A stretch of DNA of 64,000 nucleotides from positions 310,001-374,000 of the forward strand of contig NIVC01000173.1 in the NCBI GenBank assembly GCA_002269645.1, read 5' to 3'. The notes beneath the pieces were generated by a model. That model was not told where the DNA came from and searched no databases. It was given only the letters and a program-made list of their open reading frames with translations. Source of the stretch: Macrostomum lignano (Eukaryota). This document shows positions 2,650 through 57,204 of this stretch, in pieces. A program made the position numbers and the translations under genes. Each line of letters begins with the position of its first letter. Positions within the stretch are counted from its first letter, which is position 1.

Positions 2650-4054
2650 CACCAGAAGAGAAGTAACGCTATGAAGCAGTGTTCCAAGCTCCTGTCCTGC
2701 GCTTCCCCTTCTTTTTTCCCTCCAATCCTTTCCCTTCCAGTTTGCTCAAACTCAAACCAAACCGAAGCTGTCTTCCTACCCAGCCTCTCTATCACACATT
2801 TGCCCTCTTTTTATTTGGCAAGAAGAAACTCATTGCTTTCTTACCCCACCCTCCCTTCTCATCCAAGTCGCGGCAATGTAGCGCAGGTGGCAGCTGTGTT
2901 GGAGAACTGGCGCCCCAGCCGTACAACTCTCCCCCCGCAGGAAAAAAAGATGAAGGAAGAAATCCTTTTAGAGGAAGTTTCAGAAGCAAACAGATAGCTG
3001 AGGCGACGCGAGACAGGACGCGGAGCTGGGGAGAGTCAAAGTTGCGGAAAACACAAGACAAATTTGCTCCAAAAGGAATGAAGAAATTGGGAAAATGAAA
3101 CAGGAGAGGAGAAGACGGGAGAGCGACGGGGCCAGGCGTTCCCCGCCCCAAGCCAGTTGCACCTGGGAGGAGAGACACGCGACTACAGTATATTCTCACA
3201 CTACAGGTAGCTTTCAAATGCACTTTTCTGTCGGATACAAGTACAGCACTGCCATCGCTGGCTGCTTTCTTGAGCGAAATTTTCACTGACACAACTTCAG
3301 GTTAAGTACAATTGGTCCTGGTTAGTAAGTCAGTACGTTACGTGGCGAGTAAATGAAAAAAAACATGGATAAACATGATAAACAGGATGACCTTCAAAAG
3401 TTGTGACCTTGGCTTGACACAGCAAAACACACGCTAATGCTTCCTGACTACAACTTGATGTACTTACTCATACTTGGATTTGAACTGCAAATATTTATAT
3501 AATTCTGTTGTTTCGAAATCAAAATTAAAATTGTTGATGCTATATATACGTTTACGTGATGATATTATAATCGTAAAAGTTAAGATTAGGCTCAGACTGT
3601 GGGAAAAAGACACTTTTCCCAAATTAGGCAGATTAATCGTTAGGAATTTAAAATAGACAAAAATTGTAAGAAAAAGTTTCTGATAAAAGAATTACAAATT
3701 TTTAAATAATGATTTAGTAGTTTTTGAGGAGACGCGAAAAATATACGATGACGTCATCTTTGCTTCGGATTTAGTATATTAGACTAGCAATTTAAGCCCC
3801 CCGTTGGGGGACGCAAGAATGACGCCAAGTGGTTTTTATTTTGGCCTATGAGTAACAACCTTACTAATTATTCAAAATCCATTAATCAGAACTTACTTTT
3901 TCTCATTTTTGGCAAAAATAAATTGCCATGAATCAAAACCTTCAGCAAATAGTACTTATCCTTTCAAGCACAAACTCTTAGGGCATATCGTCATTGGCCT
4001 GGGCGTATTCTGGTCCGCAGCAGGAGCTCAATATGCCATAAGCCTTGATGACAT

Positions 4055-5135
4055 CTCAATAATTTCCCCAGTAAGCCTTGACATCTCAGCGATTCCTCCC
4101 AGTAAGCCTTGACAATTCAGCAATTCCCCCCAGTAAACCTTGACAATTCAGCGATTCCTCCCAGTAAGCCTTGACATCTCAGCAATTCCCCCCAGTAAGC
4201 CTTGAAATCTCAGTAATTCCCCAGTAAGTCTCGAATTTCAGTAATTCTTCCAGTAAGTCTTGAAGTCTAAGCAATTCCCCCAGTAAGCCTTGACAACTCA
4301 GCAATTCCCCCCAGTAAGCCTTGAAATCTCAGTAATTCCCCAGTAAGTCTCGAATCTCAGTAATTCCTCCAGTAAGTCTTGACTTCTCACAATTCCCCCA
4401 GTAGGCCTTGACAACTCAGCAATTCCCCCAAGTAAGCCTTCACATCTCAGCAATTCCCCCAGTAAGCCTTGACAACTCAGCAATTCCGCCAGTAAACCTT
4501 GAAATCTCAGAAATTCCCCCAGTAAGCCTTGAAGTCTCAGCAATTCCCCCAGTAAGCCTTGACAACTCAGCAATTCCCCCAAGTAAGCCTTCACATCTCA
4601 GCAATTCCCCCAGTAAGCCTTGACAACTCAGCAATTCCCCCAGTAAACCTTGAAATCTCAGAAATTCCCCCAGTAAGCCTTGAAGTCTCAGCAATTCCCC
4701 CAGTAAGCCTTGACTTCTCACAATTCCCCCAGTAGGCCTTGATGACATCTCAGCAATTTCCCCAGTAAGCCTTGACATCGCAGCAACGCGAAGTCGAGCC
4801 TTGGCATCTACGCAATTCTCCCAGCCCAGTAAGCCTTGATATCGCAGAAATCCCCCCAGTAAGCCTCGACATCGCAGCAATTACCCCATTAAGCCTTGAA
4901 ATCGCAGAAATCACCCCGTAAGCCTTGACATTGCAGCAATTAAACTCGAGCCTTGGCATCTACGCAATTCTCCCAGTCCAGTAAGCCTCGAGATCGCAGC
5001 AATTACCCCAGTAAGCCTTGACATCTCAGCAATTCCCCCAGTTAGCCTTGAAATCTCAGCAATTCCCCCAGTAAGCCTCGAGATCGCAGCAATTACCCCA
5101 GTAAGCCTTGAAATCTCAACAATTCCCCCAGAAAG
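4055..5135. repeat. ~30-bp minisatellite (CCCAGTAAGCCTTGACATCTCAGCAATTCC)
   Basis: Degenerate tandem copies. Source of several spurious ORFs. Confidence 0.93.
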
Positions 5136-5897: not shown

Positions 5898-8639
5898 TTA
5901 ATTATTTATAGCTCGTAGCATCAGCTCAAGAAATTAAATTTTAGTCTATGGCCATAGACGTATTATTATTTTTCGATCTCTCACTGCGAGAAAAATACAC
6001 TAATTAGATAGGGAAAATGCAGTTTTTTGAATATTTAAGACCTTTAGAATTGAAGCAGATAAAAGAAATGTTAACCATACAATCCTTGGTTGAGTTGCAA
6101 CTTTTTGGTGAAAACGCGATCGAAATTGGTCAAGAATTGCAGTCTGTAGAGCGTTTTACACGGACATAGATTAGAGATTTAGTATATAAGACTAGCCATG
6201 TAGCCCACTTCGGGGGGAAGCTTAAACATAACTTCCGTTTCCCGTTGAACATTTCCCTTGAAGCTTCTCAATCTAACTGCTTCACAATCCCATTTTTGGC
6301 CATAGACAATAAAAAGCAAGTCTTCAGTAGCTTGACTATGCTAGCCAGCTAAGGATTGAATAGCTTGCTCCTAGGCTGAATTGGCTTGGAAAGTGCTATA
6401 CTATCAGTGCGCTCCTAACTAAGTAAGGCTTTTAATTAAAGACAACCCTAAATACAAACTTTCATGCTTTTTCTAGAAGTTGTAATCGAAAAAAAGATTT
6501 GTTTAATAATACACATTGTTTCCTCTTTGTCGCAGAGCGTTTCTCCAGAATTTTATCGAACACACGCAAAGAGCAATATGTGTACTGGAGGCTCAGAATG
6601 TGCAGCAGATATTGTCAATACGTAAAAACTGAATAATGAGCTCTGCTAAGCTTCCGTTTTTTGGATATTTCCCCTATACCTAGATGCATGTGATGTAGCT
6701 CGCATTAGGGCAAGTGCTTAATAAGCCATCTAGTGCTCCTATTATGGACGGTCGCAGAAAGCTTGCCTAGCTCAGCTAAAAAAACTAGCATTGCCATGTC
6801 AGCTCACTCTACTGGGCTGTCCAGCTCTACCCAGAACGGTAGCGGGGGCAGGGCTGTTCCCAGGCCAGACTGTACGCGCATTTATTAAATCCTCTGAAGC
6901 CTCCCTACAACCCGCGGCCTCAGCTCTCAATTTATCCTAAGCCTAGGGAACTGGGATTTGGCATTTAGTGCGTCGCGCAAGGCAAGACGAGGGTAAGGGA
7001 TAGAAGTCTGCTAATGAGACTTGGGAGCTGGCAGAGGTAGGTAGGGGGCTAGCCTGACCAATCTAATTCTTTTCTACTTAACTGCCAACTCATACTTAAT
7101 ATCTGCTTGAAAGCAGTTCAAAGCTATCCTATTCTTCAGTGTTCTCTTTCTGAGTTTTATAAAAATTCCAAATTTAGCTACTATGCTTATGCTGCGATCA
7201 GAGATATTGATCAACCGAGATACGGTCAAGGGCCGCTTAGAATAAGTGTATCGTAATTTTTACAAGGCTCACATGCAAAGATATAATATACTCGTAATAT
7301 ATAACTGTGACTGTCGCGACTTTCTTAGTCATTTCTTCAGTTCATCTGTACTTGTTGTGGCGGCCAGACTGTACGCGACTGGCAGCACCAGTGCAGCCGC
7401 ACTGGAAACGCCCCCAAACCTCTGTCTAGCTGAGGTGGGGTGGGTGCGCGCCATGCTAGCCGGCTCGCTAAGCCGGGGGGGGGGTCGGCGTAGCCTATCA
7501 CGCCACGCCACCTTTTCGCACCTCCCTAGGCCCCTCAATCTCGCGCAGTCTGTGTACATATAAATATACATGAAATGCAGCACAAAAACTCTTCGCTGCC
7601 ATTCCATCTATTGAAACAAAAAGGCCTTCCGCCTCATTGTCCTATTTGCTCTGTTTTTCTCTCCCTCTCTGTCCAGTTCAGTCTTGTTATTCTCTCTCTC
7701 TCCCTCGCTGCCTTCTGATTGGCTCTTCAGTCTCGTTATTCTTATCTCTCTCCCCTTCAGCCTCGTTATTCTTATCTCTCTCTCCCTCGCTGACTTCTGA
7801 TTGGCTCTTTAATCTCGCATCTTTCCTTTGTCGCGCACTCCACTCATTTGCACTCAACCCCCACCCCATTAATCTAGTTAGCTCGTAATGACTTATACTC
7901 GTAAATACACTCAAATGGGCCCTGCGCCCAACCAACTTTGGATTTTCATATCATTAGATAGTTTCTCTTATTTTTATCTACGTACATGGCGCCCGAACAA
8001 AAATGCCTACATAAATGTAGATTTAGAATTTCAACGGTACCTCTACGGAGTACCTCTGCAGTAACTATTGACGCTTGTAAGAGGAAGGATTTACACTGGC
8101 GCGCTCTCTGATATATGCATGGTCGCTTTTGTTTTTTTATTCCTTGGTTTCTTCGGCCTTTAGCGATCAGCGAGAGAGCGATGAGAGTAGAGACAGATGA
8201 GGTAAATGGAGACTGGTCCACACTGTCGGATGGTGCAGCTGGTGCATACACAACAGACTGCAAGCTCGATAAATTATGCATTTTATTCTCTCGTCTCTCC
8301 CCTCCCTTTCTCTATACCCCTCTCAGTTCGTTCAGTTATAATTCCGCACTAGAGTTGCCTATGGGCCGCGATCTCGCCTATATGTGCAGCATAATCCCAA
8401 GGCCTTAATCCTCGGGCTTCCGGGAGCACACGGCGTTGAGTGGGAAGATTCCACTACCGGGCTATGGCTAACCGACGATGTCATGTGAACTCTACCTTGT
8501 AGTTATTTGTAGAGAGAGAAAGTTTTCTTTGTAGCTCAGCAGATGTTAAAGGATATTAGAGGTTAAGGGATTATGGACTTAGTAATCCCTTATGCTTATG
8601 GAGTCGAAGTGTATACAGTGGTGTCAATGGAAGTAGGAT

Positions 8640-8992
8640 CTAGGGTCTAGAAGTAGCTGAAATTGTCTAGAAGTAGCCAATAGGGTCTAGAAGTAGCCAA
8701 TAGGGTCTAGAAGTATAGCCAATAGGGTCTAGAAGTAGCCAATAGGGTCTAGAAGTAGCCAATAGGGTCTAGAAGTAGCCAATAGGGTCTAGAAGTAGCC
8801 AATAGGGTCTAGAAGTAGCCAATAGGGTCTAGAAGTAGCCAATAGGGTCTAGAAGTATAGCCAATAGGGTAATAGGGTCTAGAAGTAGCCAATAGGGTCT
8901 AGAAGTAGCCAATAGGGTCTAGAAGTAGCCAATAGGGTCTAGAAGTAGCCAATAGGGTCTAGAAGTAGCCAATAGGGTCTAGAAGTAGCCAA
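8640..8992. repeat. 20-bp minisatellite (AATAGGGTCTAGAAGTAGCC)
   Basis: Tandem copies, directly visible. Confidence 0.95.
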
Positions 8993-9156
8993 AATGATCT
9001 ATAAGTACGCTCGTAGGCGTTAAGTTACCAAATCTTGGATTCGAGGTTTAGGATAGCGCATTGGGAGATCTCTTATCGAGACAGATGCAGCTGTGCAGAT
9101 CAGCCTATTTGATGCAGATGTTTTATAACCCTATTAATTATCCCCATGCATTGCAG

Positions 9157-9314
9157 GACAGAGTCTGCTGTCTTGGTTAACAAGTTCGGCACATTTTCTC
9201 AACGTAAAGGCGCGCGGCGAACTGTACCTGTTCGTCAATCAGGTTTGCACCTGCCTGCTGGCTCTGGGCGTCATTCGTCAGGTGCAAAGCGATGCGCCAA
9301 ACTCAGTGTTTAGG
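9157..9314 (+). CDS. FMN: Formin exon B (DEP-like core: GQSLLSWLTSSAHFLNVKARGELYLFVNQVCTCLLALGVIRQVQSDAPNSVFR)
   Basis: Acceptor TTGCAG| at 9156 and donor AGG|GTGAGA at 9315. Phases match both neighbouring exons (1 in, 0 out). Not in the ORF track. Confidence 0.7.
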
Positions 9315-9423
9315 GTGAGAATTTAATAATAATTATGAGTTTAATCAGCCACAAATTCAGTACGTTGAATGTCATTTTAATTTTAAAGCCATCAGTTAAC
9401 CCATGCAGATAACTAGATTTTTA

Positions 9424-11015
9424 CTTAAACACTAGCGATTCAATTTAAACACTAGCGATTCAATTTAAACACTAGCGATTCAATTTAAACACTAGCGATT
9501 CAATTTAAACACTAGCGATTCAATTTAAACACTAGCGATTCAATTTAAACACTAGCGATTCAATTTAAACACTAGCGATTCAATTAAAACACTAGCGATT
9601 CAATTTAAACACTAGCGATTCAACTTAAACACTAGCGATTCAATTAAAACACTATAGCGATTCAACTTAAACACTAGCGATTCAATTTAAACACTAGCGA
9701 TTCAATTTAAACACTAGCGATTCAATTTAAACACGAGCGATTCAATTTAAACACTAGCGATTCAATTTAAACACGAGCGATTCAATTTAAACACGAGCGA
9801 TTCAATTTAAACATGAGCGATTTAATTTAAACACTAGCGATTCAATTTAAACACTAGCGATTCAATTTAAACACTAGCGATTCAATTTAAACACTAGCGA
9901 TTCAATTTAAACACGAGCGATTCAATTTAAACACTAGCGATTCAATTTAAACACTAGCGATTCAATTTAAACACTAGCGATTCAATTTAAACACTAGCGA
10001 TTCAATTTAAACATGAGCGATTTAATTTAAACACTAGCGATTCAATTTAAACACTAGCGATTCAATTTAAACACTAGCGATTCAATTTAAACACTAGCGA
10101 TTCAATTTAAACACTAGCGATTCAATTTAAACACTAGCGATTCAATTTAAACACGAGCGATTCAATTTAAACACGAGCGATTCAATTTAAACATGAGCGA
10201 TTTAATTTAAACACTAGCGATTCAATTTAAACACTAGCGATTCAATTTAAACACTAGCGATTCAATTTAAACACGAGCGATTCAATTTAAACACTAGCGA
10301 TTCAATTTAAACACGAGCGATTCAATTTAAACACGAGCGATTCAATTTAAACATGAGCGATTTAATTTAAACACTAGCGATTCAATTTAAACACTAGCGA
10401 TTCAATTTAAACACTAGCGATTCAATTTAAACACTAGCGATTCAATTTAAACACTAGCGATTCAATTTAAACACTAGCGATTCAATTTAAACACTAGCGA
10501 TTCAATTTAAACATGAGCGATTTAATTTAAACACTAGCGATTTAATTTAAACACTAGCGATTCAATTTAAACACTAGCGATTCAATTTAAACACTAGCGA
10601 TTCAATTTAAACACTAGCGATTCAATTTAAACACGAGCGATTTAATTTAAACACTAGCGATTCAATTTAAACACGAGCGATTCAATTTAAACACGAGCGA
10701 TTCAATTTAAACATGAGCGATTTAATTTAAACACTAGCGATTCAATTTAAACACTAGCGATTCAATTTAAACATGAGCGATTTAATTTAAACACGAGCGA
10801 TTCAATTTAAACACGAGCGATTCAATTTAAACACTAGCGATTTAATTTAAACACTAGCGATTCAATTTAAACACTAGCGATTCAATTTAAACACGAGCGA
10901 TTCAATTTAAACATGAGCGATTTAATTTAAACACTAGTGATTCAATTTAAACACTAGCGATTCTATTTAAACACGAGCGATTCAATTTAAACACGAGCGA
11001 TTCAATTTAAACACC
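9424..11015. repeat. 20-bp satellite (TTCAATTTAAACACTAGCGA), about 1.6 kb
   Basis: Highly homogeneous tandem array filling most of the formin B-C intron. Confidence 0.97.
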
Positions 11016-11472
11016 GGAAATGGAATTTAAACACTTCTATATTTAATAATACTATTCGGATATGCCATAATATCAAACTGAAAACAACAAACAAGTACAA
11101 AATATGTTCGAATGATTCAGCTGCCTAAATTGGAAAGCAATTTTGCTTCTGCGTAAGCAGCATTCTTTTTCCACTGCGATATCAAATGCTGCAGTGAATT
11201 TATTTGAATTAACAAAAGCTATTAATAGACAAATGTATGCAGAATTTACAAATGTCTGGTAGTTTATGTACAAGAGACCTTTATAGAATTTAATAAACCA
11301 TAGCATTTTGCTATTATCGTCCGCTATTGTGAAGTGGGATCATGCAGCTGGCAGCTGTTCATACTAGTAGCCATTGACAATGAACTGCAGCCTGTCCCAA
11401 TGCCCCGAGTTCTGCCTTTCCGACCGAATCTCCATCACTGTGCTGTATCCCGAGCCGCCTTCGACTTTGCAG

Positions 11473-11535
11473 CCGCACGAGTTCTACGAATGGTGCGGTC
11501 AGCAGGCTCCTCCGCCAGCAACGCAGCCGACGTCT

Positions 11536-11573
<38 letters not shown>

Positions 11574-12219
11574 CAACTTGTCGCCTTCAAGACGTCAGCA
11601 ACGACAGCTTCAACAGCAACCGACAGTTGGCGAGTCCGCGGAAGACACTGTCTGTGCCGCCCTCGCCCAGGCGAAGCGAGACTTTGACGACAGAATCAAC
11701 CGGCTGCAGCTGGAGCACAAGGAGGAGCTGGAGCGGCAACGGCAGGACGCTGATTTAAGAATCTTCCAAGCTAAAAATGAAAGCGTCATGAAGGTCTGCA
11801 GTCTGCGCGACAAAATCGAACAGCTCGAGCAGCGGGTTGAGAAGTATCGGATTCTAGCTGGAATCGAGGGCTTGCTCAGCGGTCAGGATGTTGCTGCGGT
11901 GGCGACGGCTTCCGCTGCCGCTGAAAAAAGCGGCTCTAGCAAGACTTTACCGACCGCTGCTGCTCAGGGCCCAGCGATTGGCTCTGATTCCGCTTCCGCA
12001 GCTGATGGTACCGCAGCTCCTCCAGTCGCGCCAGCCAGCTTTGACAAGTCGGTGGACACCAGCGATATTCAGCAGGTGCTGGGCGAACTCAGCAGCAGCA
12101 GTCCCGAGTCGCGCAGCCCGTTGGCAAGCGCCTCCGACTGCGCACCGATGACGGTCGACGCTTCAGCGCAGACGGACGTCTCCGGATTCGCGGCACCGCC
12201 TCCGCCGCCTCCGCCGCCG

Positions 12220-12254
<35 letters not shown>

Positions 12255-12884
12255 CCCTCCACCACCACCGCCCCCGCCGCCTCCGCCACCGCGACCAAGC
12301 AGCCTCAGTGGCGGCGCCGCCAAGTCTGCCAGCAACCAGCAGCAGCCGGGCTCCCAGGTGAGCGTCAAGGAGCAGATCATGCACTGGCAGGAGCAGTCAG
12401 TGGAGCCGCATCGCCGGGCCTGTCTCAACCTCAAGACGCTCTACTGGTCGCCGATCTACTTGAACCGGCTGCCGCCTGGCAAAGCCGGAGTCTGGGAGTC
12501 TGTCGACAGGATGGCGCTGCCAAACTCGCGCGATCTTGAGCGCCTGTTCGCCAGGCCGAGTGGCGAGTTGAGCAAGGCGGGTCGAGCCGCCAGCGCGGCC
12601 GGCAACTTGGACAGCCCGCTGAGTGCAAGCGCCGAGGGGAAGCCGTCCGGCTCTCCCGCCAAGCTGTTGAACTCGAAACGGGCTCAGAATTTAGGCATTT
12701 TTATTGCTGCAACCCAGATAGACAAGGACGCTCTGTACAGCTGTTTGGTGGCCTTTGAACCTGGCTGCATCTCCGTGGAGCAGCTCAAACAGCTGCGCGA
12801 TCTCACGCCAAGTCAGGAGGAGATGGCTCAGATTAAAGAGTTCGTGGCCTCAAATCCTGGAGCAGTTTTGGATCGGCCTGAGCG
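11473..12884 (+). CDS. FMN: Formin exon C: end of DEP-like domain, poly-Q, coiled coil, FH1 polyproline, start of FH2
   Basis: Lies in ORF 11374..12888. About 32 consecutive Pro at 12196-12291. LKTLYWSPI...VWESV...LERLF...KLLNSKRAQNLGI matches the FH2 start of FMN formins. Acceptor CTTTGCAG| at 11472, donor CG|GTGAGT at 12885. Confidence 0.9.
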
Positions 12885-12939
12885 GTGAGTCTGTGCAGGT
12901 TGACTGCATCAAATTACTGCTGGTAGATAACCCAACTCT

Positions 12940-13640
12940 CACCAAGCTCTGTGTAATCGGTGAGCATGTCTCTCTCACCCAGCTCTGTGCATTCGGTGAG
13001 CATGTACTCTCACCCAGCCCTGTCATTTAGTGAGCATCTACTCTCACCTAGCCCTGTCCTTTAGTGAGCATCTACTCTCACCTAGATCTGTCCTTTAGTG
13101 AGCATCTACTCTCACCTAGATCTGTCCTTTAGTGAGCATCTACTCTCACCTAGATCTGTCCTTTAGTGAGCATCTACTCTCACCTAGATCTGTCCTTCAG
13201 TGAGCATCTACTCTCACCTAGCCCTGTCCTTTAGTGAGCATCTACTCTCACCTAGATCTGTCCTTTAGTGAGCATCTACTCTCACCTAGCCCTGTCTTTT
13301 AGTGAGCATCTACTCTCACCTAGATCTGTCCTTTAGTAAGCATCTACTCTCACCTAGATCTGTCCTTTAGTGAGCATCTACTCTCACCTAGATCTGTCCT
13401 TTAGTGAGCATCTACTCTCACCTAGATCTGTCCTTCAGTGAGCATCTACTCTCACCTAGATCTGTCCTTTAGTGAGCATCTACTCTCACCTAGATCTGTC
13501 TTTTAGTGAGCATCTACTCTCACCTAGATCTGTCCTTTAGTGAGCATCTACTCTCACCTAGATCTGTCCTTTAGTGAGCATCTACTCTCACCTAGATCTG
13601 TCCTTTAGTGAGCATTTACTCTTACCTATATCTGTAACTT
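12940..13640. repeat. 34-bp minisatellite (TGAGCATCTACTCTCACCTAGATCTGTCCTTTAG)
   Basis: Tandem array just after the donor at 12885. Confidence 0.95.
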
Positions 13641-13680
13641 TGGTGAGAGTCTCAGCTACTCTCAGCCTTTTAAATGATAG

Positions 13681-13800
13681 ATTATATTAGATTAGATTAG
13701 ATTAGATTAGATTGGATTAGATTAGATTAGATTAGATTAGATTAGATTAGATTAGATTAGATTAGATTCGATTAGATTCGATTAGAATAGATTGGATAAA
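13681..13800. repeat. (ATTAG)n microsatellite
   Basis: Pentanucleotide run. Confidence 0.95.
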
Positions 13801-13917
13801 ATTGGATATGTCAGACTACTTAAGCTACTGCATTACGCTGTGAGTAGTCAGCATCGACATAGCTGCAGTAACCAACAGTTGTCAACTTAGACACACACGC
13901 AATGCCCCTCGGCACAG

Positions 13918-14191
13918 ATTTCTGCTATCAATTTCGGAGATTCCGTTCTTCTCGGAGCGTCTGCACTGCATGCTGTTCCAATTGGAGCACGAGGACTGCG
14001 TCTCAGCGCTGGAGTCTCGCGTCACCGCGCTCATCTCGGTCTGCCGTCAGCTGTACGAGAGTCGATCGGTGCGAAAAGTGCTCAGCCTGGTGCTGGCGCT
14101 GGGCAACCTGCTCAACTATGGTACCAGCAGAGGGCGCGCTGATGGATTCGGTCTGGAGATTCTGGGCAAGCTGAAGGATTTGAGATCCTCG
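13918..14191 (+). CDS. FMN: Formin exon D (FH2 core)
   Basis: RFLLSISEIPFFSERLHCMLFQ...LVLALGNLLNYGTSRGRADGFGLEILGKLKDLRSS contains the FH2 GNxMN/GxAxGF motifs. Phase 2 in, phase 0 out. Confidence 0.93.
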
Positions 14192-14239
14192 GTTAGTTGA
14201 TGAGGCTTATGCATTTTAATACTGATGTAGCCATGTAAC

Positions 14240-15125
14240 CTGTCTTAGGTGCTTACCTGCCTGTCTTAGGTGCTTACCTGCCTGTCTTAGGTGCTTACCT
14301 GCCTGTCTTACATGTAGGTGCTTACCTGCCTGTCTTAGGTGCTTACCTGCCTGTCTTAGGTGCTTACCTGCCTGTCTTAGGTGCTTACCTGCCTGTCTTA
14401 CATGTAGGTGCTTACCTGCCTGTCTTAGGTGCTTACCTGCCTGTCTTAGGTGCTTACCTGCCTGTCTTAGGTGCTTACCTGCCTGTCTCAGGTGCTTACC
14501 TTAAGTTACCTGCCTGTTTAATTTATAGGTGCTTACCTGCCTGTTTTATTGGTGATTACCTGCCTGTTTTATTGGTGCTTACCTGCCTGTTTTATTGGTG
14601 CTTACCTGCCTGTTTTATAAGTGCTTACCTGCCTGTTTATTGGTGCTTACCTGCCTGTTTTATTGGTGCTTACCTGCCTGTTTATTGGTGCTTACCTGCC
14701 TGTTTATTGGTGCTTACCTGCCTATCTTAGGTGCTTACCTTAAGTTACCTGCCTGTTTATTGGTGCTTACCTGCCTATCTTAGGTGCTTACCTTAAGTTA
14801 CCTGCCTGTTTAATTTATAGGTGCTTACCTGCCTGTTTTATTGGTGCTTACCTGCCTGTTTTATTGGTGCTTACCTGCCTGTTTTATTGGTGCTTACCTG
14901 CCTGTTTTATTGGTGCTTACCTGCCTGTTTATTGGTGCTTACCTGCCTGTTTATTGGTGCTTACCTGCCTATCTTAGGTGCTTACCTTAAGTTACCTGCC
15001 TGTTTAATTTATAGGTGCTTACCTGCCTGTTTTATTGGTGCTTACCTGCCTGTTTTATTGGTGCTTACCTGCCTGTTTTATTGGTGCTTACCTGCCTGTT
15101 TCATTGGTGCTTACCTGCCTGTTTT
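14240..15125. repeat. 21-22-bp minisatellite (TTAGGTGCTTACCTGCCTGTC and variants)
   Basis: Tandem array after the donor at 14192. Confidence 0.95.
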
Positions 15126-15489
15126 AGGTAAATGAGACAAAATGGGAAAACAGGGGTAAAAGAATAGGGAGTGGATATTGGATTGCTTGTGTGTAATTGT
15201 ATCAAGTTACAGTTATTGCCTGAATAAAGCACTAGATATATTTTCATAATATTCTAAACTATGATGAGTATTGCTTAATCTGTCTCAGGCTGAGCATACT
15301 TGCGTTTCTCAAAGCTACTTCAAGGTAAAGTATTATATTAGTTATGCCCAGTTCATTTGTTACATTAAAGTTCGACTGCTGTTGAAGTTTAAAGTTTAAA
15401 AAAAACTTTGCTGACTAAATCTTGCACTGTTTCTTGAAGTTCTACTTCAAAAACAAAACAGAACTCATCAAAAATGAATTTCATCTCAG

Positions 15490-15772
15490 GAGAACACCTG
15501 CACGCTATTCCAAGTGCTGGTTAGCATGTACATCGACGAGTACTGGGAGAGCGGCAGCCCCGAGCTGGGCACCGTAGTGCCGTTCCCTCTGCCCGACCCG
15601 GAAGAGGTCAAGCAAGCGGCTGAAGTGGACCTGGCCGGCGTGAAAGGCGAACTGCGGCACCTGTCGGCCAGGCTGATTGCCAACGAGAAGATCGTGAGAA
15701 AGGTGGCCACCTCGTCTGCGCCTAGCGAGCGGGAACCGTTTGCTAAGAAGATGAACTCATTTCTGGATAGAG
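15490..15772 (+). CDS. FMN: Formin exon E (FH2)
   Basis: ENTCTLFQVLVSMYIDEY...VVPFPLPDPEEV...EPFAKKMNSFLDR. The FPLP motif is typical of FMN1/2/Capu. Acceptor CATCTCAG|, donor AG|GTGAGC. Confidence 0.9.
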
Positions 15773-16877
15773 GTGAGCTGAGGTCAGCAATGCTTGTAAT
15801 AAGTAAATGTTGGATGCAGTAGTTTGTTTGTTTGTTCTGGGGAACCGTTCGCAAGTTTGGTTCGAGTGTGACATCCAGAGTAAATATTAGATAACAAACA
15901 CTCAGGACTTGCTTGCACCGTCGACACCGAATGAGCCATTGAATTGCATATGAATCCGATGTACAATCACGCAAAAATTGGCTTGGTTTGCATGCCGCCA
16001 GCTCTGTAGTAGGCCATCGTACTGGATTTGGAATGAAGACGTTAGTGCATCATCAAAGAAGCCGCCGGTTGTGTCATCGGTGTAAAAGCAGTTCAGGGAA
16101 TCGAATATTCGAGCACTTGTACCAACGATTAACCATTTTTGTTGCACACACCTGCCAATTCAACAACAACATGTGCTGTCTAGGTCTTTACAAAGGTACA
16201 TGTAGAGTCACCGGGCGCGCCTCTGGTCCGATCGAATTCTGGACGCTGGCGTCAGCCAGCAGGCAGTTGACGAAACATCGAGTGCACGCCTGCCCCCTCC
16301 GGTAGGGTTGCCAGCAGCGTCAGCAGCAGAACCTTATGCACCGGCTGTGACCAGTGCGAGTTCATGGCGAATGATGTGGCCTCCCAGCTGGAGTCGGCGT
16401 AAAAGGTCGCTTGGACGGGCCAAGGGCGTTGCGGCGTTGATGAAATGGAAACTCTGCTCGTCGCCTGTGTTGAAGGCGTCGCAATTATGCAGTCCTTCCC
16501 ACCGCCGAAGCTCAAGGCGATAATTTGATCTAGTCAAATGACTAGCGAGTAGTCAACCAGGCATGCCCATCCGCTGACCCCTGAGTACGCAAACGCGCTC
16601 AGACAGGATGTACAGTCCTGACGTAGTTCGATTCCGTTCTCTGCGACGTCTATCTAGAGCCGTGAGAGTCTCGACCATTGCGACCGAACCTCCAAGAAGC
16701 AGATCGTGTACATTCTTGACGATTAGACAATGCATGTCTGTGTGGTTGCTAACAGACAAGCACAGACATACTGCATCGATACTGCATCGATTCTAACGCG
16801 TCTTCATCATACCTTCTCTATACATTAGAAAATGGCCCCATGGTTCGTTTACTTTTCAATTTTCATTTTTCCCACAG

Positions 16878-17067
16878 CCAAAAAAGATTTAAGCGAATTT
16901 CGCGAAACAGTTACGGACGCCGAGACTTGCTACTGCAACATTCTCATGTACTTCTGCCAGCCGCCATCCACACCGCCAAAGGAGTTTTTCAGCCACTGGG
17001 CAGCGTTTTGTGTCGATTTTAAAGAGCAGCTTAGGCGACAAGTTAATCTGCGGCAGCGAGGGGTCAC
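16878..17067 (+). CDS. FMN: Formin exon F (end of FH2); terminates at TGA 17069-17071 if unspliced
   Basis: AKKDLSEFRETV...YFCQPPSTPPKEFFSHWAAFCVDFKEQL matches the FH2 C-terminus (FFxxWxxFCxDFK). Phase-1 acceptor CCACAG|. A perfect donor AC|GTGAGT overlaps the stop codon. Confidence 0.88.
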
Positions 17068-17267
17068 GTGAGTGTTTACAATATGTTTTAATTAGTAATT
17101 TTACTACACCTTTTTACTTTCTATTTTGAAAAATCTGCACTCAATATTGACATCTTTGCATTCAATTTTGACAATCTTTGGCATCGCTTGTTGAAATTTT
17201 CAACCTATTTTGACAAACCCAAATGCAATAGTGACGAATTTCAACTGAAATTGACAAACTCCCAACT

Positions 17268-17464
17268 TTATTAACAATTTGCAAGCAATTTTGACAGTGT
17301 GCATTCAATTTTGACTATGCATTCAATTTTTTGCATTCACTCTGTCAAAAATTGATGCACATATGCAAGTTTTGTTCCATAGACGGCGAGACAAAGGCAC
17401 TGTTTTGTAACCCAGTGTCAAAATTGAATGCTCACTGTCAAAATTGCTTGCAAATTTTTAATAA
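17268..17464. repeat. 48-bp inverted repeat with 101-bp spacer (fold-back/MITE-like)
   Basis: 17268-17315 is the reverse complement of 17417-17464 with about 2 mismatches. Confidence 0.85.
17383..17410 (+). CDS. FMN: Possible short terminal formin exon (TRRDKGTVL*)
   Basis: Acceptor GTTTTGTTCCATAG| is phase-compatible with the donor at 17068. Stop TAA at 17408-17410, AATAAA at 17460. Too short for homology support. Confidence 0.3.
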
Positions 17465-18466
17465 ATTTTTAATTTTTAAATTCTGCCATAATCTGAGTTA
17501 GGAAACATGGCTTAGAACAAATGAGCAAATTCATCTTTAGTATTAAAACTTGTTGACTTGAAGGCAGTATATTCTATACCTAATTGGGTTTTTGCCTCAA
17601 TAGCCTGAATGAGTTTATGGTTGTTGCTAGTTGATGAAGCATCTGCTTTAGTAAAAAAAGCCTTTTTTAAGCAGAAAAACACTTCCCTATTCCCTTCATG
17701 CTTCTTCCTTTTTATGTGTTGTTTCATGACTGCAATGCCATTATTTCTTATATTAATAGTCACCATTTCTTCACTTTCATTTGTAGAACTCACTTAGTTT
17801 TGGAATTCATTTACTTGATTTGCTGGTTTTGAAATGATTGACTAATATTTTATCAAAATGTTTTCACAAACAATCTGATAAAACTACCATCTATCAGGCA
17901 AAAAACTGATTAATTGTCCACTTATCTTTGCTTTTATAACTGCATTTTTTATGTTCCTAACTATGAAAAAGTGAAAAATCAATGTGACAAAGTGTGACAA
18001 AACCAATGGAGGCTGAAGCAACAGTTCATTAGTCTAACTGCAAACCTTTACTATTTACTACTAAGATCTCCAAAGAAAAGTAAATGATGTCAAGGTTGTA
18101 ATTTAGCACAAATGTAGCTAGCACAAAATTTAGCACAAAATGTCATGACTTGTAGTTAGTGCTGGTTAATATATTCATAAAATGCAATTGTCATTGCTAA
18201 TAATTTAGCAACATTTCAATTGAATTATTCAATACTGAATATATTCCTATTTACTAAAAATAAGCAATATAAAATCCATTTTATCTATAAGTTATGCACT
18301 TAGCCTAAACTTCAAATGTGACAGCTTGTTATGTATTTGTTTATCTTTATTAATCTTTGAAGAGTCTACAGAATTTCATGCTACATGTACTGAGTGCATG
18401 CATGTACTATCTAAAAAGACTTTTATTAGTCAGTTGTTATAAAATGCTTGCTTTTTCAGATGCCCC

Positions 18467-18724
18467 ATGGCCAGTCCAGAAGAGGACACTGGTCGCAATA
18501 GAGATTCGCTCTCGCCTCCATTTGACGATGTCAATGATGATGACGAAAATGACAGTAATAATAGCTATAGTTCGGATGCAGATGAAGGTAGTGCTGGGCA
18601 GCTGGGCGAACAGGAGTTGGATCCAGCTGTCTGGTGCTTGTTGGATAGGGTTGGACGGAGGCACTGGCTTAACAGCGATGGACTGCTGCTGATTGGTCGG
18701 GAGGATTGCAGCCTCATGCTTAAG
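18467..18724 (+). CDS. CEP170: CEP170-like exon 1 (acidic leader plus start of FHA)
   Basis: [14 protein letters not shown]...[13 protein letters not shown] aligns with the CEP170 FHA start (WFLV...RHRL...FVGRDDCELML). Acceptor TTTTTCAG| at 18459, donor AAG|GTGACT. Confidence 0.88.
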
Positions 18725-18764
18725 GTGACTGTTAGTGAATTCGTTTGGTTAGCCATTTATCTCT

Positions 18765-19035
<271 letters not shown>

Positions 19036-19098
19036 TGTATGCCTACTTACCTACCTGGTAAAATGTCTAGATATTAATTAGCCTATTAATAATTTCAG

Positions 19099-19188
19099 TC
19101 GCACAGCGTGGATCCTCAGCACGCTGTGATGACATACGACTCCGAGCTCGGACTGTATCGCGTCAAAGACCTCGGCACTGTTAACGGG
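19099..19188 (+). CDS. CEP170: CEP170-like exon 2 (FHA)
   Basis: SHSVDPQHAVMTYDSELGLYRVKDLGTVNG carries the FHA SxxHA and DLGSxNG motifs. Phase 0/0. Confidence 0.93.
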
Positions 19189-19449
19189 GTAAGCCTTTTA
19201 AGCCGTTTGCCGTTCGCTTTTTTCGTCTTTCTAGTCATTTTTTATGACAGTCTGCCGGCAGTTTTTTTGCTCCCCTTCGCCTTCTATTCTTGCAACTATC
19301 TATTTTTCTAAGAAATATTGATTGACAGCCGATGTCTGTTCGCTAACTTCACTTCCTTCTTTTTATATATTTTTCTATCTAGTTTCTAGTATTCCGTTTT
19401 TTGACGCATTTTTTAAATTTGTACTGTATTTTCTTTTTCTGAATATGCT

Positions 19450-20300
19450 GGCACCCACTGAAGTACCTGAAGAGGGCAGTGGCACCCGCTGAAGTACCTG
19501 AAGAGGGCAGTGGCACCCACTGAAGTACCTGAAGAGAGAGCGGTGGCACCCACTGAAGTATCTGAAGAGGGCAGTGGCACCCACTGAAGTACCGGAAGAG
19601 AGAGCGGTGGCACCCACTGAAGTATCTGAAGAGAGAGCGGTGGCACCCACTGAAGTATCTGAAGAGAGAGCGGTGGCACCCACTGAAGTATCTGAAGAGG
19701 GCAGTGGCACCCACTGAAGTACCGGAAGAGAGAGCGGTGGCACCCACTGAAGTATCTGAAGAGAGAGCGGTGGCACCCACTGAAGTATCTGAAGAGGGCA
19801 GTGGCACCCACTGAAGTACCGGAAGAGAGAGCGGTGGCACCCACTGAAGTATCTGAAGAGAGAGCGGTGGCACCCACTGAAGTATCTGAAGAGAGAGCGG
19901 TGGCACCCACTGAAGTACCGGAAGAGAGAGCGGTGGCACCCACTGAAGTATCTGAAGAGAGAGCGGTGGCACCCACTGAAGTATCTGAAGAGAGAGCGGT
20001 GGCACCCACTGAAGTATCTGAAGAGGGCAGTGGCACCCACTGAAGTACCGGAAGAGAGAGCGGTGGCACCCACTGAAGTATCTGAAGAGAGAGCGGTGGC
20101 ACCCACTGAAGTATCTGAAGAGAGAGCGGTGGCACCCACTGAAGTATCTGAAGAGAGAGCGGTGGCACCCACTGAAGTATCTGAAGAGAGAGCGGTGGCA
20201 CCCACTGAAGTATCTGAAGAGGGCAGTGGCACCCACTAGAGTACCCGAAAGAGGGCAGTGGTATCCACTGAAGTACCTGAAGAGAAAGCGGTGGCACCTA
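19450..20300. repeat. 30/33-bp minisatellite (GTGGCACCCACTGAAGTATCTGAAGAGAGAGCG)
   Basis: In CEP170 intron 2. Produces the repetitive ORFs at 19375-20297. Confidence 0.95.
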
Positions 20301-20377
20301 CTGCATACTTCTCAGGTTCTATAGACACTCGTGCATAGTCGTACAATGATACAGAACCGTTATATTTTCATTGCCAG

Positions 20378-20692
20378 ACATTTGTCAACGAGAGCAGAAT
20401 AGCCGAGGACACCTATGTTTACCTTAACAACGGCGATTCGCTTCGGTTTGGTTACGATTCTAATGTGTTTCGAGTGCAAAGATTTTCCCCAACAACCGCC
20501 GCTGCCACAACGTCTTCTGCGGCCTCCTCAACGCCTCCTTCAGCTGCTCCGTCTGCTTCAGTGCCCGCGACCGCCGCTTCTGCCCTGAAAAGGTCCGAGC
20601 ATCCGCCTGTTGTGTCTCGACCGTCTCTCAGTGGCTTGCCCGTATGGGCTACTGGCGCTGCTAAGGGTGTCTCAGCTATGGCCGAGTGTCCG
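20378..20692 (+). CDS. CEP170: CEP170-like exon 3 (end of FHA plus S/A/P-rich linker)
   Basis: TFVNESRIAEDTYVYLNNGDSLRFGYDSNVFRV matches CEP170 TFVNDVRI...LRFGYD. Donor CCG|GTGAGT at 20693. Confidence 0.92.
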
Positions 20693-23460: not shown

Positions 23461-23809
23461 GCCTGCACTCAGGGCAGCGAAGAATTTCGCCGGTCAAGCG
23501 CAGACCTGAGCAGACTGTGCCTGTTTCATCAGAAGGAGCTGGATCGCGTCTCCACCGCAGCTAGCATGCCCTCGCCTGGTCAACAATCGGCGGCACCAGC
23601 AACAGCAGCGACCTCTAGCAAACCGGCTGTAACCGCCTCAGTGACCGCTTCTGTAGCTGGAATGCAGGATCCCGGCTTCTCAAAAGATTCGCTCAATTTC
23701 AACTCTAACAATACTACTCAAAATAGTAATACTAGTAAGGATGGCGCCAAGGAAGCTAGTTGCAGCAAAAATAACTTTTCTAGAGGCGTTGAACGAAAGA
23801 AGATTAAAG
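23461..23809 (+). CDS. CEP170: CEP170-like exon 4 (low-complexity linker)
   Basis: Open frame from acceptor CACCCAG| to donor AAAG|GTAAGA. It supplies the phase 0-to-1 change needed between exons 3 and 5. No motif recognised. Confidence 0.65.
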
Positions 23810-24962: not shown

Positions 24963-25990
24963 AACTCTACGGCCAGCCCGACTGGTGGGGCACCGACGAC
25001 GCCGATGAAGAACGAGAGCAGCAATCTGCGAAACAGAAAAAGCAGCAACAGCCGCCGCCTCAGCCGCCGCCCCCGCCGCCCCCGCAACCAGCGTCGCCGC
25101 CTCGACGTTTGCCGAATCGTCACGCCGAAGCGTTCACGGTGGCTTTGGACCCGTCAGCCGAAGACGCGACATCATCAACCGAGTGTGTCGCTGGCGACGG
25201 CAGCAGCGGAGGCGCCGGTTTCGTCGCCGGCAGCGGCGTGGGCGGCGGCAGCGGCGACGGCCTTCAAGTGACGGACAGTCTAAGCCGGTTTGTGCCGTCA
25301 AAAATTCGTAAAAGCTTCCAGGAGAGGCAGGAAATGAAACGAAAGAAAGTTGAAGAACTGCGCGAGCGAACGCGGCAGCAGCAGCAGCAGCAGGTGCCGC
25401 CGTCGGCGTCTGTTGCTAAGCGCCCGATCGCCGCCTCTAGACAGTCGTCGGCCCCCCTGGCGCCTGGCGCCGTTACTAAACCAACTTCCGGTGGTGCCTC
25501 GGCGCCATCTAGAAATGCTCGAAGCGTCAGCGGCAGCGGAACCGGAAGCGGTGGAAAAGCTTTTTTGTTTGATCGCCTGTTGAAAAGCAACAGTAGGGTT
25601 GGCGGAGGTGGTGGCGCTGGTGCCGGCGCTGCTACGGATCGGCGCCGAACTAGCGCCAATTCTGGCGCCGCTAGTTCAACCGGTGGCAGCGGCGCCGCAG
25701 GTCGGATTAGTATTCGAGATAAGCCGTTGCCGCCGCCTCCGCCGCCGTCTAAAAAGCAGCAAAAACAGAAGCAGCAGCAGCAGCAGCAGCAGCAAAAACA
25801 GCAGCACCCACTATCCGAGCGAGACCTCTACTCAGAAGCTGCTCAATACGAAGATGAGCTGCCCGACGTGGATAATGAGGATGCTGCGAGTGAGACTGGC
25901 ACCTACACAATATCTGAGAGCGGCAGCGCGCACGAGGACGCTGAGTTCAGGCATCTGGAGGCTCTGGCTGACAGTCTCGACGCGGGACAG
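24963..25990 (+). CDS. CEP170: CEP170-like exon 5
   Basis: LYGQPDWWG (CEP170 LYGQPSWWG) and SETGTYTI (CEP170 SDxGTYTI) motifs. Within ORF 24935..26038. Donor CAG|GTGCGA. Confidence 0.88.
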
Positions 25991-30244: not shown

Positions 30245-31081
30245 GAACTGGAATTGAGGGCCGGGCCCAAATGGGTAACCGATATGGTCAGCGTGAACGG
30301 CGCTGCCGGAGTCGATGCGGCCGCTTCAACTGCGGCAACAACAACAGCAGCAGCGCCAAAGCCAGCGTCCCCGGTTGTTGCATTGAGGCGAGACAGCGAG
30401 GCATCTGACGACACGTGTCATCAGTCTCAGGTGTCGGACGTGCTGTCGTCTGGGCCTATTGATGAAGAGCGCAATAATAAACAGCAACTGTTAGACGAGC
30501 AGCAACGTTCAGCATCCTTGGATACGGCCTGCCTACTGCAGGACACGGCCACTGTTCTTCATCACATGGAGGCCCGCCTAGCAACCAGAGCCGGGGGACC
30601 AGAGCCAGAAAACGACATCAGCAATGCCGCACTGTCGGATCAGGCAGCTTTGCCAACATCGCACAGTCTCCGTTCTCGTCTGTCCGCTTTGCGGGTGGCA
30701 AAGTCTCAGCAGCAGCAGCAGAAATCCACTGCTAGCAGTCGCCAGGCTTTCGAATACGGCCGGCACTCGTTGAAGATGCCAGCCTCCAGTACGCATCCGC
30801 CTCCGGTGTCGAGGAATGCGGTCACCGCTGCCGCCGCCACGGCGACCTCCGCCACGATTTCAACGCCGCACAGAATTCTGTCGGCGGGCTCGCCGTCCGC
30901 CTGGCGCGGCGGTCGTCGGCCGGAAAGTCTGCACGAAGCTCTGGCGACGTCGGCGGCGGCCGCGGGACGTCCGAGTTTGCGCGGCTCTGCGGAGGACGTT
31001 CGAGCCAGTCGGGATGCTCGCCACCGGGGCGGCGGCGGCACGGATCTCAGTCGGGATTTGGAGCGGCTGGCTAGGAGAGAG
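30245..31081 (+). CDS. CEP170: CEP170-like exon 6
   Basis: ORF 30254..31117 with exon-like codon usage. Acceptor TTCACAG|, donor GAG|GTTGGC, phase 0/0. Confidence 0.75.
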
Positions 31082-32638: not shown

Positions 32639-33173
32639 AGGCTGAAGTGCGAGCTAACCATTCGTCATCCGCATCCAAGCCGGTCCCCATTCCTCTCCAA
32701 ACAGGATCTGAGTGGATTAGGCGCTGCCGCCGGTCGCCAATCGTCTGCTTTCTCGCCGACCACCTCCAACAACAACAGCAGCAGGGCGCCATCCTCCTCC
32801 GTGGTTGTGGTCGGAGGTGGCGGCGACGGCGGCACCTGCGACTGCGCTTGCCACCATGAAGCGGGCAGGCAGCAGCAGCTCAGGCGCGAGGTGGCGGCCT
32901 ACGACTCTGTGCTGCTGTCCAGCCTGGTCAGAATGAGCTGCAAACTGCGTCGCTGCTCTGACGGCCTTCTTGGCCGGCTCCGGAGCAGCCGGCATTTGAG
33001 TCGGACTCCGAGTCCGGCTGAGGACGTCCTGTTGAACAGCCCCGACGCTGCCGGAGCATCCTTAGCGGCTGCCGCGGCTCCGGGGGCGTCGGCTGAAGGA
33101 CGGAGCAGCGACTTGCAGGACAATCTGCAGTCGTGTCTGTACAATTTGCAGGCTGTGCAGTATCATATTCAGA
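32639..33173 (+). CDS. CEP170: CEP170-like exon 7 (CEP170 C-terminal-like region)
   Basis: AYDSVLLSSLVRMSCKLRRCS resembles the CEP170 C-terminal DSxLxSxVxQxSxKIR segment. Acceptor TGTCTCAG|, donor A|GTGAGC at 33174 (read-through stops at 33191-33193). Confidence 0.8.
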
Positions 33174-34630: not shown

Positions 34631-34809
34631 TAATCGAGCGGGCGATCTTTCCGCAAGCTCAGAGCGGCCGCAACTCGGCCCTCGGCAGCTGCTCCGAAGG
34701 CGATTACCTGGTCGAGCGTGAACGAATTAATAGCGAAGTTCGCGGCTTCCAACCGATTGAGCCGGCGTTCCCGTCTACTCAGCTGAAGTTCTACACAGAC
34801 TATAAGTAG
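34631..34809 (+). CDS. CEP170: CEP170-like terminal exon 8 (IIERAIFPQAQSG...KFYTDYK*)
   Basis: Acceptor TTCCCGCAG| is in phase 1 with the donor at 33174. The joined NLQAVQYHIQIIERAIFP fits the CEP170 'NLxxVExxLxxIxxxIDP' helix. It is a GC-rich island in AT-rich DNA and is absent from the ORF track. Confidence 0.7.
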
Positions 34810-53270: not shown

Positions 53271-54472
53271 CTGCTGGTATAACTTCTAGCACTAGAGGAG
53301 GCCGAGGGAATGCTTATAAAAATATGCCATAATTAGTACTACTTAGCATAGCAGTGATTTTGTTCTATATAATAATTTCTCGCGAAATCTCAGGTGAAAG
53401 TAAACCGTTATTCGCAAAAGCCAGGCGTTGCTTCACCGAAAGCTTGTTTTGGCTATTGCGAGACTGGGCGGAACTGATTGAATGTAAAAGTTAAAAAACA
53501 TTTTCCTCCATCATTTTTTCTAAACTGGTTTGCGAGCTGCTGCATGCCCTCGAAATCCGATTGTCTCTGAATTTTATAGACGATTGAATTTCAAAGACGG
53601 ATCGACTTGAAAGGGAAAAACGTCTTGATGCCAAAGCACGCAATTATTAAATGGCTAGTCACTCTTTTTTTGCGAATTAGCTAAGCTTTCAAAGGTGGAA
53701 AATGCACGATGTCCTAGCGCAATAGTACAGTCAATTTTAACAAAAAATGAATTACATTATTACAGGATTTGCGATTTAGGGATAGTAATCATAATCAATG
53801 CTATTAATTAAAATCGTGCGTAATTAAAGCCGATACTAAAAGAGTGTAACCTTTATTCGCGTTTAATTAAAAGGAACTCTTTTATTAAAGGGACTGCAAT
53901 TGATTAAAAGGATGATAAAGTGTGGATTCGGTCTTTTTATGGCGCAATTAAGTCGATAAGGTTTAGGTTCAGATTGTCAGTCATAAAAGCGAGATTTACT
54001 CCGATCCGGACTGTATAGATATAGGTCTGTTTAATTTTTTAAGAAATCTAAAACTAATACTGTAAGTACTTTAACTTACTGTCTTTTTCAGGTTCTTTAT
54101 AAGGTCTTTGTTCAGAAGATCTAGCTCCCGGTTGGTTTTTAGTTAAATTTTTAACTTTTCTAAATTTGAAATTCTACTCAAATTATCAAATTATTTATTT
54201 ACTATTTTCGTTATAATATATTATAAAAATAATGTAAATACAAGTTTATTTTGATAGCCCGTGTTATTAAATTGTTAAAGAATAATAGCAGTAACATTAA
54301 ATCTAAATCGTAATAATATAAGCATTAATGTTAATCCCGAAATTCATTGACGATCAGTATTCATTTTTATTACTTTTGTCATTCTTGTTATTCTTTAAAG
54401 AAAAATACGGTAATATTTGAAGGTCAGACACAGCTATTTATCAATACCAAGACCCTCTGATTCCTCATGCAG

Positions 54473-57159: not shown

Positions 57160-57204
57160 GTGAGAATTTTATAATTGAGGTGGAAAATGAAGCTTAACTG
57201 AAGA

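Follow-up and report, generated by a model that had tools for sequence, protein, structure and literature searches.

The flatworm Macrostomum lignano adds a spliced leader (SL; CGGTCTCTTACTGCGAAGACTCAATTTATTGCATG) to many of its messages at acceptors fitting the motif [T/C]TNCAG (PMC8629364), with trans-splicing reported for 30% of its genes and 45% of its conserved genes (PMC8629364; PMC5730564). Operons, in which 15% of its genes have been placed, are recognized by a repeat-adjusted distance of <1 kb, also where trans-splicing affects the downstream gene of a pair alone; an acceptor without an upstream donor is taken to be trans-spliced, and the genome as a whole is highly duplicated (PMC8629364). 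In Caenorhabditis elegans, addition of an upstream donor turned a trans-splice acceptor into a cis acceptor (Conrad et al., 1993, in the summary given in PMC8629364). The locus considered here lies in a 64,000-nucleotide stretch (“the window”) of M. lignano scaffold NIVC01000173.1, scaffold position being window position + 310000, and consists of a formin gene followed on the same strand by a gene for a CEP170-like FHA-domain protein.

A first-pass annotation of this stretch had noticed that the last formin FH2 exon could be spliced in frame to the FHA gene, and had offered three explanations: (a) a DEP-FH1-FH2-FHA chimera, (b) an operon resolved by SL trans-splicing, or (c) two separate genes. 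Comparison with two other copies of the pair suggests that the formin and the FHA gene are probably neighbouring, separately transcribed genes, and that the copy in the window bears the scar of a ~7.3-kb deletion. The missing formin tail, the unpaired donor and the short gap between the genes thus point to a deletion scar and not to a designed FH2-FHA protein; nor are they good evidence for an operon.

The formin gene, its donor and the foldback junction

The same formin/FHA gene pair is present on NIVC01002983.1 (L001) and NIVC01000436.1 (L002), which are the comparison copies used throughout; a further range, L003 (NIVC01000173.1:318476-354809, carrying PAA88843.1), matches the window at 100% over 8476-20500, the stretch compared. 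The window's formin can be followed on the + strand through four exons. Exon A (11380..12884) holds the probable start codon, placed at 11380 by inference from the 760- and 768-aa annotated products of the paralogs, a coiled coil, a poly-proline FH1 stretch with a run of ~33 prolines and the beginning of FH2 (Pfam FH2 profile positions 8-137, E=1.5e-10), and ends in the donor CG/GTGAGT (12884/5; here and below the slash marks the splice site). Exon B (13891..14191), whose splice phases fit, exon C (15490..15772; 98% match to UniProt A0A1I8I319, an M. lignano FH2 protein) and exon D (16878..17067) together cover profile positions 148-372 of 372 (E=4.4e-48), so that FH2 is complete to its end. 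Exon D, which ends in ..RQRGVT, is 100% identical to A0A1I8I319, the same as in L001 and with 3 differences from L002; the intact copies have one more coding exon after it, whereas in the window no later formin exon survives. The best matches bearing names are formin and cappuccino.

Exon D is followed by GTGAGT, a phase 2 donor (17068..17073, + strand; GT at 17068-69) in the context ..CGA GGG GTC AC/GTGAGT. It is the single occurrence of GT[G/A]AG between 16878 and 18724, and its 14-nt context is shared unchanged by all three copies (L001 1291, L002 1073). Direct reading of 16400-19400 bore out both splice signals on which the first-pass annotation had built: this donor at the end of the last FH2 exon, and an acceptor ending at 18459, 7 nt before the ATG of the FHA gene. 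The overlap of the donor with an in-frame TGA (17069-71), to which it had also drawn attention, is present and uninformative, as the internal donor of exon A, CG/GTGAGT, shows it likewise.

In L001 and L002 the donor has a partner. A native acceptor (AAATTTCAG/A AAG TTC..), 1955 nt past the donor in L001 and 1658 nt past it in L002, opens a terminal exon of 39 nt on the + strand (L001 3254-3293; L002 2739-2778), with a TTTCAG acceptor and matching phase, encoding T-KFNISSSVESNG and a stop; the letters read AAATTTCAG/A AAG TTC AAC ATC AGC TCT TCA GTG GAA TCA AAC GGC TAG. The annotated + strand genes upstream of the FHA genes (768 and 760 aa) end exactly on the stop codons of this exon (L001 3293, L002 2778), and A0A1I8I319, identical to the window formin through ..RQRGVT, continues with KFNISSSVESNG. 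Because the identical context continues into a further exon in two paralogous loci and in A0A1I8I319, GTGAGT at 17068 is shown to be the genuine donor of the penultimate formin coding exon.

The tail KFNISSSVESNG is not encoded in the window, all frames having been searched, and the window's formin copy has no tail exon at all. The lack of a tail noticed in the first pass is accounted for by the deletion, and the intact tail is itself just 12 aa. In FMN/cappuccino formins a basic tail after FH2 is the formin-Spir interaction motif; the native tail of the paralogs, KFNISSSVESNG, contains no basic cluster.

How did the window copy lose this exon? The window can be aligned up to 17299, from 15770 with L001 (1-1507) and from 16023 with L002 (24-1291); homology then returns only at window 17478 (L002 9239) and 17833 (L001 9078). 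The stretch missing from the window, L002 1948-9238 or ~7.29 kb, held the terminal exon, the 3' untranslated and poly(A) regions of the formin, and the greater part of the spacer between the genes, and no copy of it was found elsewhere in the window, save the 168 nt of a foldback element's own arm and one short repeat fragment. In the intact copies the FHA gene begins 6,707 nt (L001) or 7,222 nt (L002) beyond the formin end, of which 0-134 nt are tandem repeat.

The left breakpoint falls inside the right arm of this foldback (inverted-repeat) element, which is whole in both other copies: ~1 kb long (L001 1310-2321; L002 1095-2116), with arms of ~290 nt around a spacer of ~430 nt (L001 arms 1310-1598 and 2029-2321). 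The window keeps a truncated version (17103..17468), in which the left arm survives in its outer part and the right arm over ~130 nt, with the centre gone (L001 1508-2038); its remaining arms, 17264-17315 and 17417-17468, are 52 nt each and 94% complementary. At the junction itself (17452..17480), right-arm homology stops at 17462, 17463-17477 is filler, and homology to L002 9239 onward begins at ~17478. The filler holds a second copy of the 11-nt AAATTTTTAAT, and this duplication generates an AATAAA at 17460-65 where the paralogs read AATGAA. RNA of 17100-17480 is predicted to fold at -104 kcal/mol (z=-8.6), with the AATAAA inside a 52-bp stem.

The opposite polarity, in which L001 and L002 would have gained the 7 kb by insertion, was rejected: the stretch is present in both, it contains no open reading frame (ORF) longer than ~150 aa, and the foldback is truncated in the window. 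Because a truncated palindromic element cannot yield a complete one, the window state appears to be the derived one.

These relationships also bear on the formin end that had been proposed under option (c). Both the TAA (17408-10) and the AATAAA (17460-65) are located as claimed, but the one belongs to the foldback arm and the other is made by the junction. The mini-exon leading to the TAA (17383-17410, + strand, RRDKGTVL and a stop) is likewise part of the foldback arm and not a conserved exon: its sequence is found in both orientations in L001 and L002, where TAC stands in place of TAA, and the gene models of the paralogs skip it. Mini-exon and hexamer were accordingly rejected as the native end of the formin.

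Two repeats accompany the formin gene. Directly upstream of its probable start at 11380 is a tandem array of ~1.6 kb (9419-11035; hit offsets are multiples of ~20 nt). A GC-rich repeat fragment (..RMMWPPSWSRR..), probably a transposon remnant, lies in the intron before exon D (16248-16399) and occurs again in the spacer deleted from the window copy (L002 3457-3588, L001 ~3990-4100).

The CEP170-like gene and its acceptor

The product of the downstream gene has an FHA domain (Pfam FHA, E=2.7e-14) whose best match among solved structures is the FHA domain of human CEP170 (PDB 4JON, E=2.5e-27; the next FHA is at 9e-7). The CEP170 C-terminal family (CEP170_C) was not among the Pfam hits of the full 1,171-aa product at E<=1, which comprised only FHA and Yop-YscD_cpl, a fold akin to FHA; because no CEP170 C-terminal domain was detected, “CEP170-like” is, on sequence grounds, the safe name for the protein. 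Three such proteins from GenBank assembly Mlig_3_7 form one cluster: PAA88843.1 (Mlig002046.g1, partial; P0154), which is the window's own product, PAA54032.1 (Mlig006295.g1, complete, from MASPEE) and PAA83038.1 (Mlig018398.g1, partial). In all three copies GenBank has the FHA gene as a separate gene, labelled “.g1”, the first of its transcriptional unit, and all three models start at MASPEE or just past it. The ~55-aa acidic segment before the FHA domain, earlier likened to a linker, is simply the annotated N-terminus of the FHA protein (MASPEE.. in PAA54032.1).

Eight window exons on the + strand, spliced and translated, give PAA88843.1 exactly. Coding exon 1 (18467..18724) has the main ATG at 18467 and encodes MASPEE.., the acidic N-terminus and the beginning of the FHA domain; exons 2-8 are at 19099-19188, 20378-20692, 23461-23809, 24963-25990, 30245-31081, 32705-33173 and 34631-34809, stop included. 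In L001 the coding sequence begins with the homologous ATG.

The 5'-most acceptor of the gene is TTTCAG at 18454..18459 on the + strand (gctttttCAG, AG at 18458-59; TTTTTCAG ends at 18459), and acceptor and exon start, TTTTTCAG/ATGCCCCATGG, are kept in the window and L001. It fits the SL acceptor motif, which occurs at 1.53 per kb on the + strand and twice in the 1.39-kb gap between the formin donor and the FHA gene; the chance of such a motif ending <=10 nt upstream of a given ATG is ~1.5%, and here the distance is 7 nt. The exon starts with ATGCCCCATGGCC, that is, with a 7-nt leader and an upstream, out-of-frame ATG at 18460 (18460..18501, + strand), which runs for 13 codons to a TAG at 18499-501 and overlaps the main start at 18467. 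All of 18460-18501 is the same in the three copies.

Ahead of the acceptor lies a retained upstream region (17478..18459, + strand), promoter and/or outron, in which out-of-frame ATGs are numerous and no GT[G/A]AG donor occurs. Homology to L002 9239-9966 extends over window 17478-18259 at 88.6%, L002 having no counterpart of window 18260-18434, and window 17833-18459 is homologous to L001 9078-9993; about 1 kb ahead of the acceptor is kept in all copies, as a promoter belonging to the gene itself would predict. Since this gap has no consensus donor and many out-of-frame ATGs, SL use at 18460 is the most plausible native use of the site: the acceptor at 18459 would most plausibly be the FHA gene's own 5' acceptor, natively SL trans-spliced, and trans-splicing there would strip away the ATG-rich region upstream. 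A search of the window for an SL RNA gene gave no match with <=3 mismatches.

The copies of the FHA gene also differ among themselves. In the protein encoded by exon 1, the window copy reads NNSYSS and EGSAG where the others have NDSYSS and EDDAG or EGGAG. Where L002 9957-9992 is set against window 18260-18459, the acceptor AG is gone and 175 nt just upstream are deleted as well, and the L002 copy may be processed differently or be in decay. Gene lengths are 16.3, 18.4 and 20.6 kb, explained in part by an array of a ~33-nt unit in intron 2 (window 19400-20300), which is several-fold longer in L002 (10900-14500). Long (TATC)n/(CTAT)n microsatellites are found in intron 1 (18770-19030) and at 2100-2660.

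Competing explanations

Several observations weigh against two separately transcribed genes with a trans-spliced acceptor at 18459. The formin copy in the window, despite its open, well-spliced exons A-D, has no GenBank coding sequence (window 8476-18475 = L003 1-10000), while its paralogs are annotated in L001 (768 aa) and L002 (760 aa); given this, the window copy may be silent. The acceptor AG is lost in L002 (CAG to CTG), so that it is dispensable in some copy. Two of the three FHA coding sequences are 5'-partial and start 3-4 codons past the conserved ATG (PEEDTG.., EEDTG..), that of PAA88843.1 at 18476, and the corresponding transcript models begin at ~18474-79 in the window (L002 10001), not at 18460. 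An SL ending in AUG and joined at 18460 would produce AUG-AUG, with an out-of-frame reading frame of ~15 codons over the true start. Finally, the deletion, known from an assembly, may be an artefact.

The starts of the 5'-partial coding sequences adjoin a pair of tandem AGs (18473/74, 18478/79); should these be SL acceptors, the start codon would be spliced off and the SL AUG would be out of frame. Use of the SL's terminal AUG as the start codon was considered for joins at 18460, 18475 and 18480 and rejected, being out of frame each time.

Two separate genes are annotated in all three copies, and to that extent option (c) stands; the formin ends that it named, 17071 and 17410, are not native. 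Could the window copy nevertheless end there now, at the TGA of 17069-71 or in the mini-exon at 17383-17410, with polyadenylation downstream of the AATAAA at 17460? The window does contain these stop codons and the hexamer, and ending at the TGA would cost just the 12-aa tail, with FH2 complete to Pfam position 372 of 372. The hexamer is, however, new, made by the junction and buried in a stable stem, and the paralogs also have the acceptor at 17382, yet their gene models pass over it. Poly(A) signals are usually suppressed, moreover, when a strong donor ahead of them stays unspliced, which likewise counts against such an end. Taken literally, then, this version of option (c) is tenable but rather doubtful.

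A further possibility follows from the deletion itself. What is left is an orphan donor 1.39 kb upstream of the first FHA acceptor, matched in frame by chance. Formin transcripts of the window copy, lacking a normal 3' end, would keep the intron and stop at the TGA, or else continue downstream; in the latter case the orphan donor would capture the FHA acceptor in cis and give a fusion mRNA of the window copy only. Such an mRNA would have arisen accidentally through the deletion and would not represent an evolved architecture.

As the first-pass annotation had pointed out, joining 17067 to 18460 does keep the frame, a one-in-three chance, and a single ORF stays open; the junction would read ..GGGGTCAC/ATGCCCCATGG.. 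in the fusion, compared with ..GGGGTCAC/AAAGTTCAAC.. in the native formin. The in-frame relation is already present in L001, where the genes are 6.7 kb apart, and so was not selected after they came together. A fusion transcript is mechanistically reasonable, because the donor has no partner exon, the native poly(A) region has been lost, and 18459 is the one YAG site, out of 31 in the gap, at which that donor leads into a long ORF.

An in-frame message of ~1,940 codons joining formin and FHA protein, if only as a minor isoform, would thus be favoured by the loss of the native terminal exon and poly(A) region, by a strong donor proven in the paralogs, by the burial of the gap's sole AATAAA in a 52-bp stem, by the position of 18459 as the next consensus-type acceptor that leaves a long ORF open, and by the conversion of trans to cis acceptor on addition of a donor in the C. 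elegans experiment of Conrad et al. (1993), as it is cited in PMC8629364. Against it, GenBank has no formin coding sequence in this copy; the FHA transcript model is unfused, beginning at ~18475 with an ORF that is still open at its 5' end; and the formin transcript could instead keep the intron and end at the TGA, or be spliced to the TAG acceptor at 17382. On balance a transcript of this kind is somewhat unlikely, and the likelihood that it is functional is far lower than that of its existing. The fuller proposal, that a recent 7.3-kb deletion turned an SL trans-splice acceptor into a cis acceptor and so created an expressed in-frame formin-CEP170-like fusion gene, must be called unlikely. 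If it were true, the locus would be a natural counterpart of the donor insertion of Conrad et al., with a newborn chimeric gene beside two intact parental copies.

Option (b), in which formin and FHA gene share one pre-mRNA resolved by SL trans-splicing at 18460, fares less well than its starting points might suggest. The acceptor does fit [T/C]TNCAG, and trans-splicing is plausible. The two genes are adjacent and on the same strand, only + strand genes are called around the pair, and no opposite-strand gene lies between them; 15% of M. lignano genes are in operons, with the <1 kb rule extending to pairs trans-spliced only downstream; and in the window ~980 nt separate 18460 from a putative poly(A) site near 17480. 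This short distance is a product of the deletion, however. Intact copies have 6,707 or 7,222 nt, with tandem repeat of 0-134 nt, and so lie outside the limit of 1 kb once tandem repeats are subtracted. The FHA gene is “.g1” in all three copies, and ~1 kb upstream of the acceptor is retained in each of them, as expected if it has a promoter of its own. An operon is therefore improbable.

Similarly improbable is that the deletion is an artefact of Mlig_3_7 and that the locus is really like L001 and L002. The breakpoint is in a palindromic element, which is hard for long-read assemblers, and the genome is highly duplicated (PMC8629364). The junction, on the other hand, is a clean 11-nt duplication whose breakpoints share no long repeat, and the flanks show differences specific to the window copy (TAA as opposed to TAC, a 20-nt duplication, and 2-12% divergence).

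Is there any trace of a fused protein elsewhere? In an exhaustive search with the hypothetical chimera as query, P0004 matched the FHA half at 99% identity, and none among the best 150 of 5,715 hits matched both halves. When the chimera, the FHA N-terminus or formin exons A-B served as queries in word-index searches, just A0A1I8I319 (P0001) and distant hits came back, with no fused protein for the chimera. No fused formin-FHA model was found for M. lignano in GenBank or UniProt, the models of all three copies being unfused, and the architecture is not shared by the paralogs, since in L001 and L002 the formin keeps its terminal exon and ~7 kb of spacer follow. Option (a), a regular evolved FH1-FH2-FHA chimera combining an actin nucleator with a CEP170-type protein through cis-splicing of 17067 to 18460, has the in-frame join, two strong signals and the sole gap acceptor with a long open ORF in its favour, but is extremely improbable given that the intact copies provide the donor with its own terminal exon and stop, with the FHA gene 6.7-7.2 kb further on, that all three FHA genes are annotated alone and PAA54032.1 is complete from MASPEE, and that no two-half protein appears among those hits.

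Neighbouring features and known systems

Two features further along the window may be noted. A 22-nt unit (TAGTGTCAGCTGTGTTAGACAG), in ~342 copies, forms a 7.6-kb array at 38543-46172 and is the source of the strong GC skew at 38-46 kb; the array is within the span annotated for a GenBank gene whose product has 926 aa (L003 29893-36334, + strand, equivalent to window 38368 onward), a model that deserves checking. Further downstream, at 54400-63000, is a + strand gene of RasGRP type, with RasGEF (E=4e-14) and C1 (E=7e-16) domains.

In the literature, no mention of Mlig002046, Mlig006295 or Mlig018398 was found in the M. lignano supplements searched, nor of CEP170, FMN or formin in the supplements of Wudarski 2017, Grudniewska 2016 and Grudniewska 2018, and no paper was found joining Macrostomum with CEP170.

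What, then, is the interest of the locus? A claim to a new FH2-FHA protein or a new operon is not supported: these are ordinary neighbours, already annotated separately. The pair does offer a clean, polarised case in which a deletion in one copy of a duplicated genome strips a gene of its last exon and poly(A) site, leaving an orphan donor in frame with the probable trans-splice acceptor of the next gene. If the copy is transcribed, it would give a direct view of SL acceptors captured in cis and of how fusion genes originate. It also counsels caution in annotating the repeat-rich, multi-copy M. lignano genome, where one formin copy is unannotated and two of three FHA coding sequences are 5'-partial.

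Compared with known systems, the formin resembles the FMN/cappuccino formins in its FH1 poly-proline stretch and complete FH2, and differs from them in a native tail that extends ~21 aa past the region aligned with relatives, whose own tails are ~40-50 aa. The downstream protein is like human CEP170 in having an FHA domain near the N-terminus, and unlike it in the ~55-aa acidic extension before that domain and in the low complexity of the remainder.

The closest setting for the acceptor is that of the SL genes and operons of the same species (Wudarski et al. 2017, PMC5730564; Ustyantsev & Berezikov 2021, PMC8629364), with which the FHA gene shares the TTTCAG motif, a leader of only 7 nt, its standing as a conserved gene, and a neighbour on the same strand. 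It departs from them in that the SL's terminal AUG is out of frame for the FHA start, and from the operons in that the intact formin/FHA spacing is 6.7-7.2 kb as against a threshold of 1 kb, with the FHA gene first in its unit.

Deletion-born fusion and read-through genes are similar in having lost a terminal exon, poly(A) region and spacer, so that an orphan donor faces the next acceptor, here in frame; they differ in that the fusion here is predicted from genomic sequence, the downstream acceptor is probably a trans-splice and not an internal cis acceptor, and two intact copies of both M. lignano genes remain. The nearest experimental parallel is the C. elegans work of Conrad, Liou & Blumenthal (1993): there an engineered nematode construct, here a natural deletion that appears to have brought a proven donor into position ahead of a likely outron acceptor, with an outcome that in M. 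lignano is predicted only.

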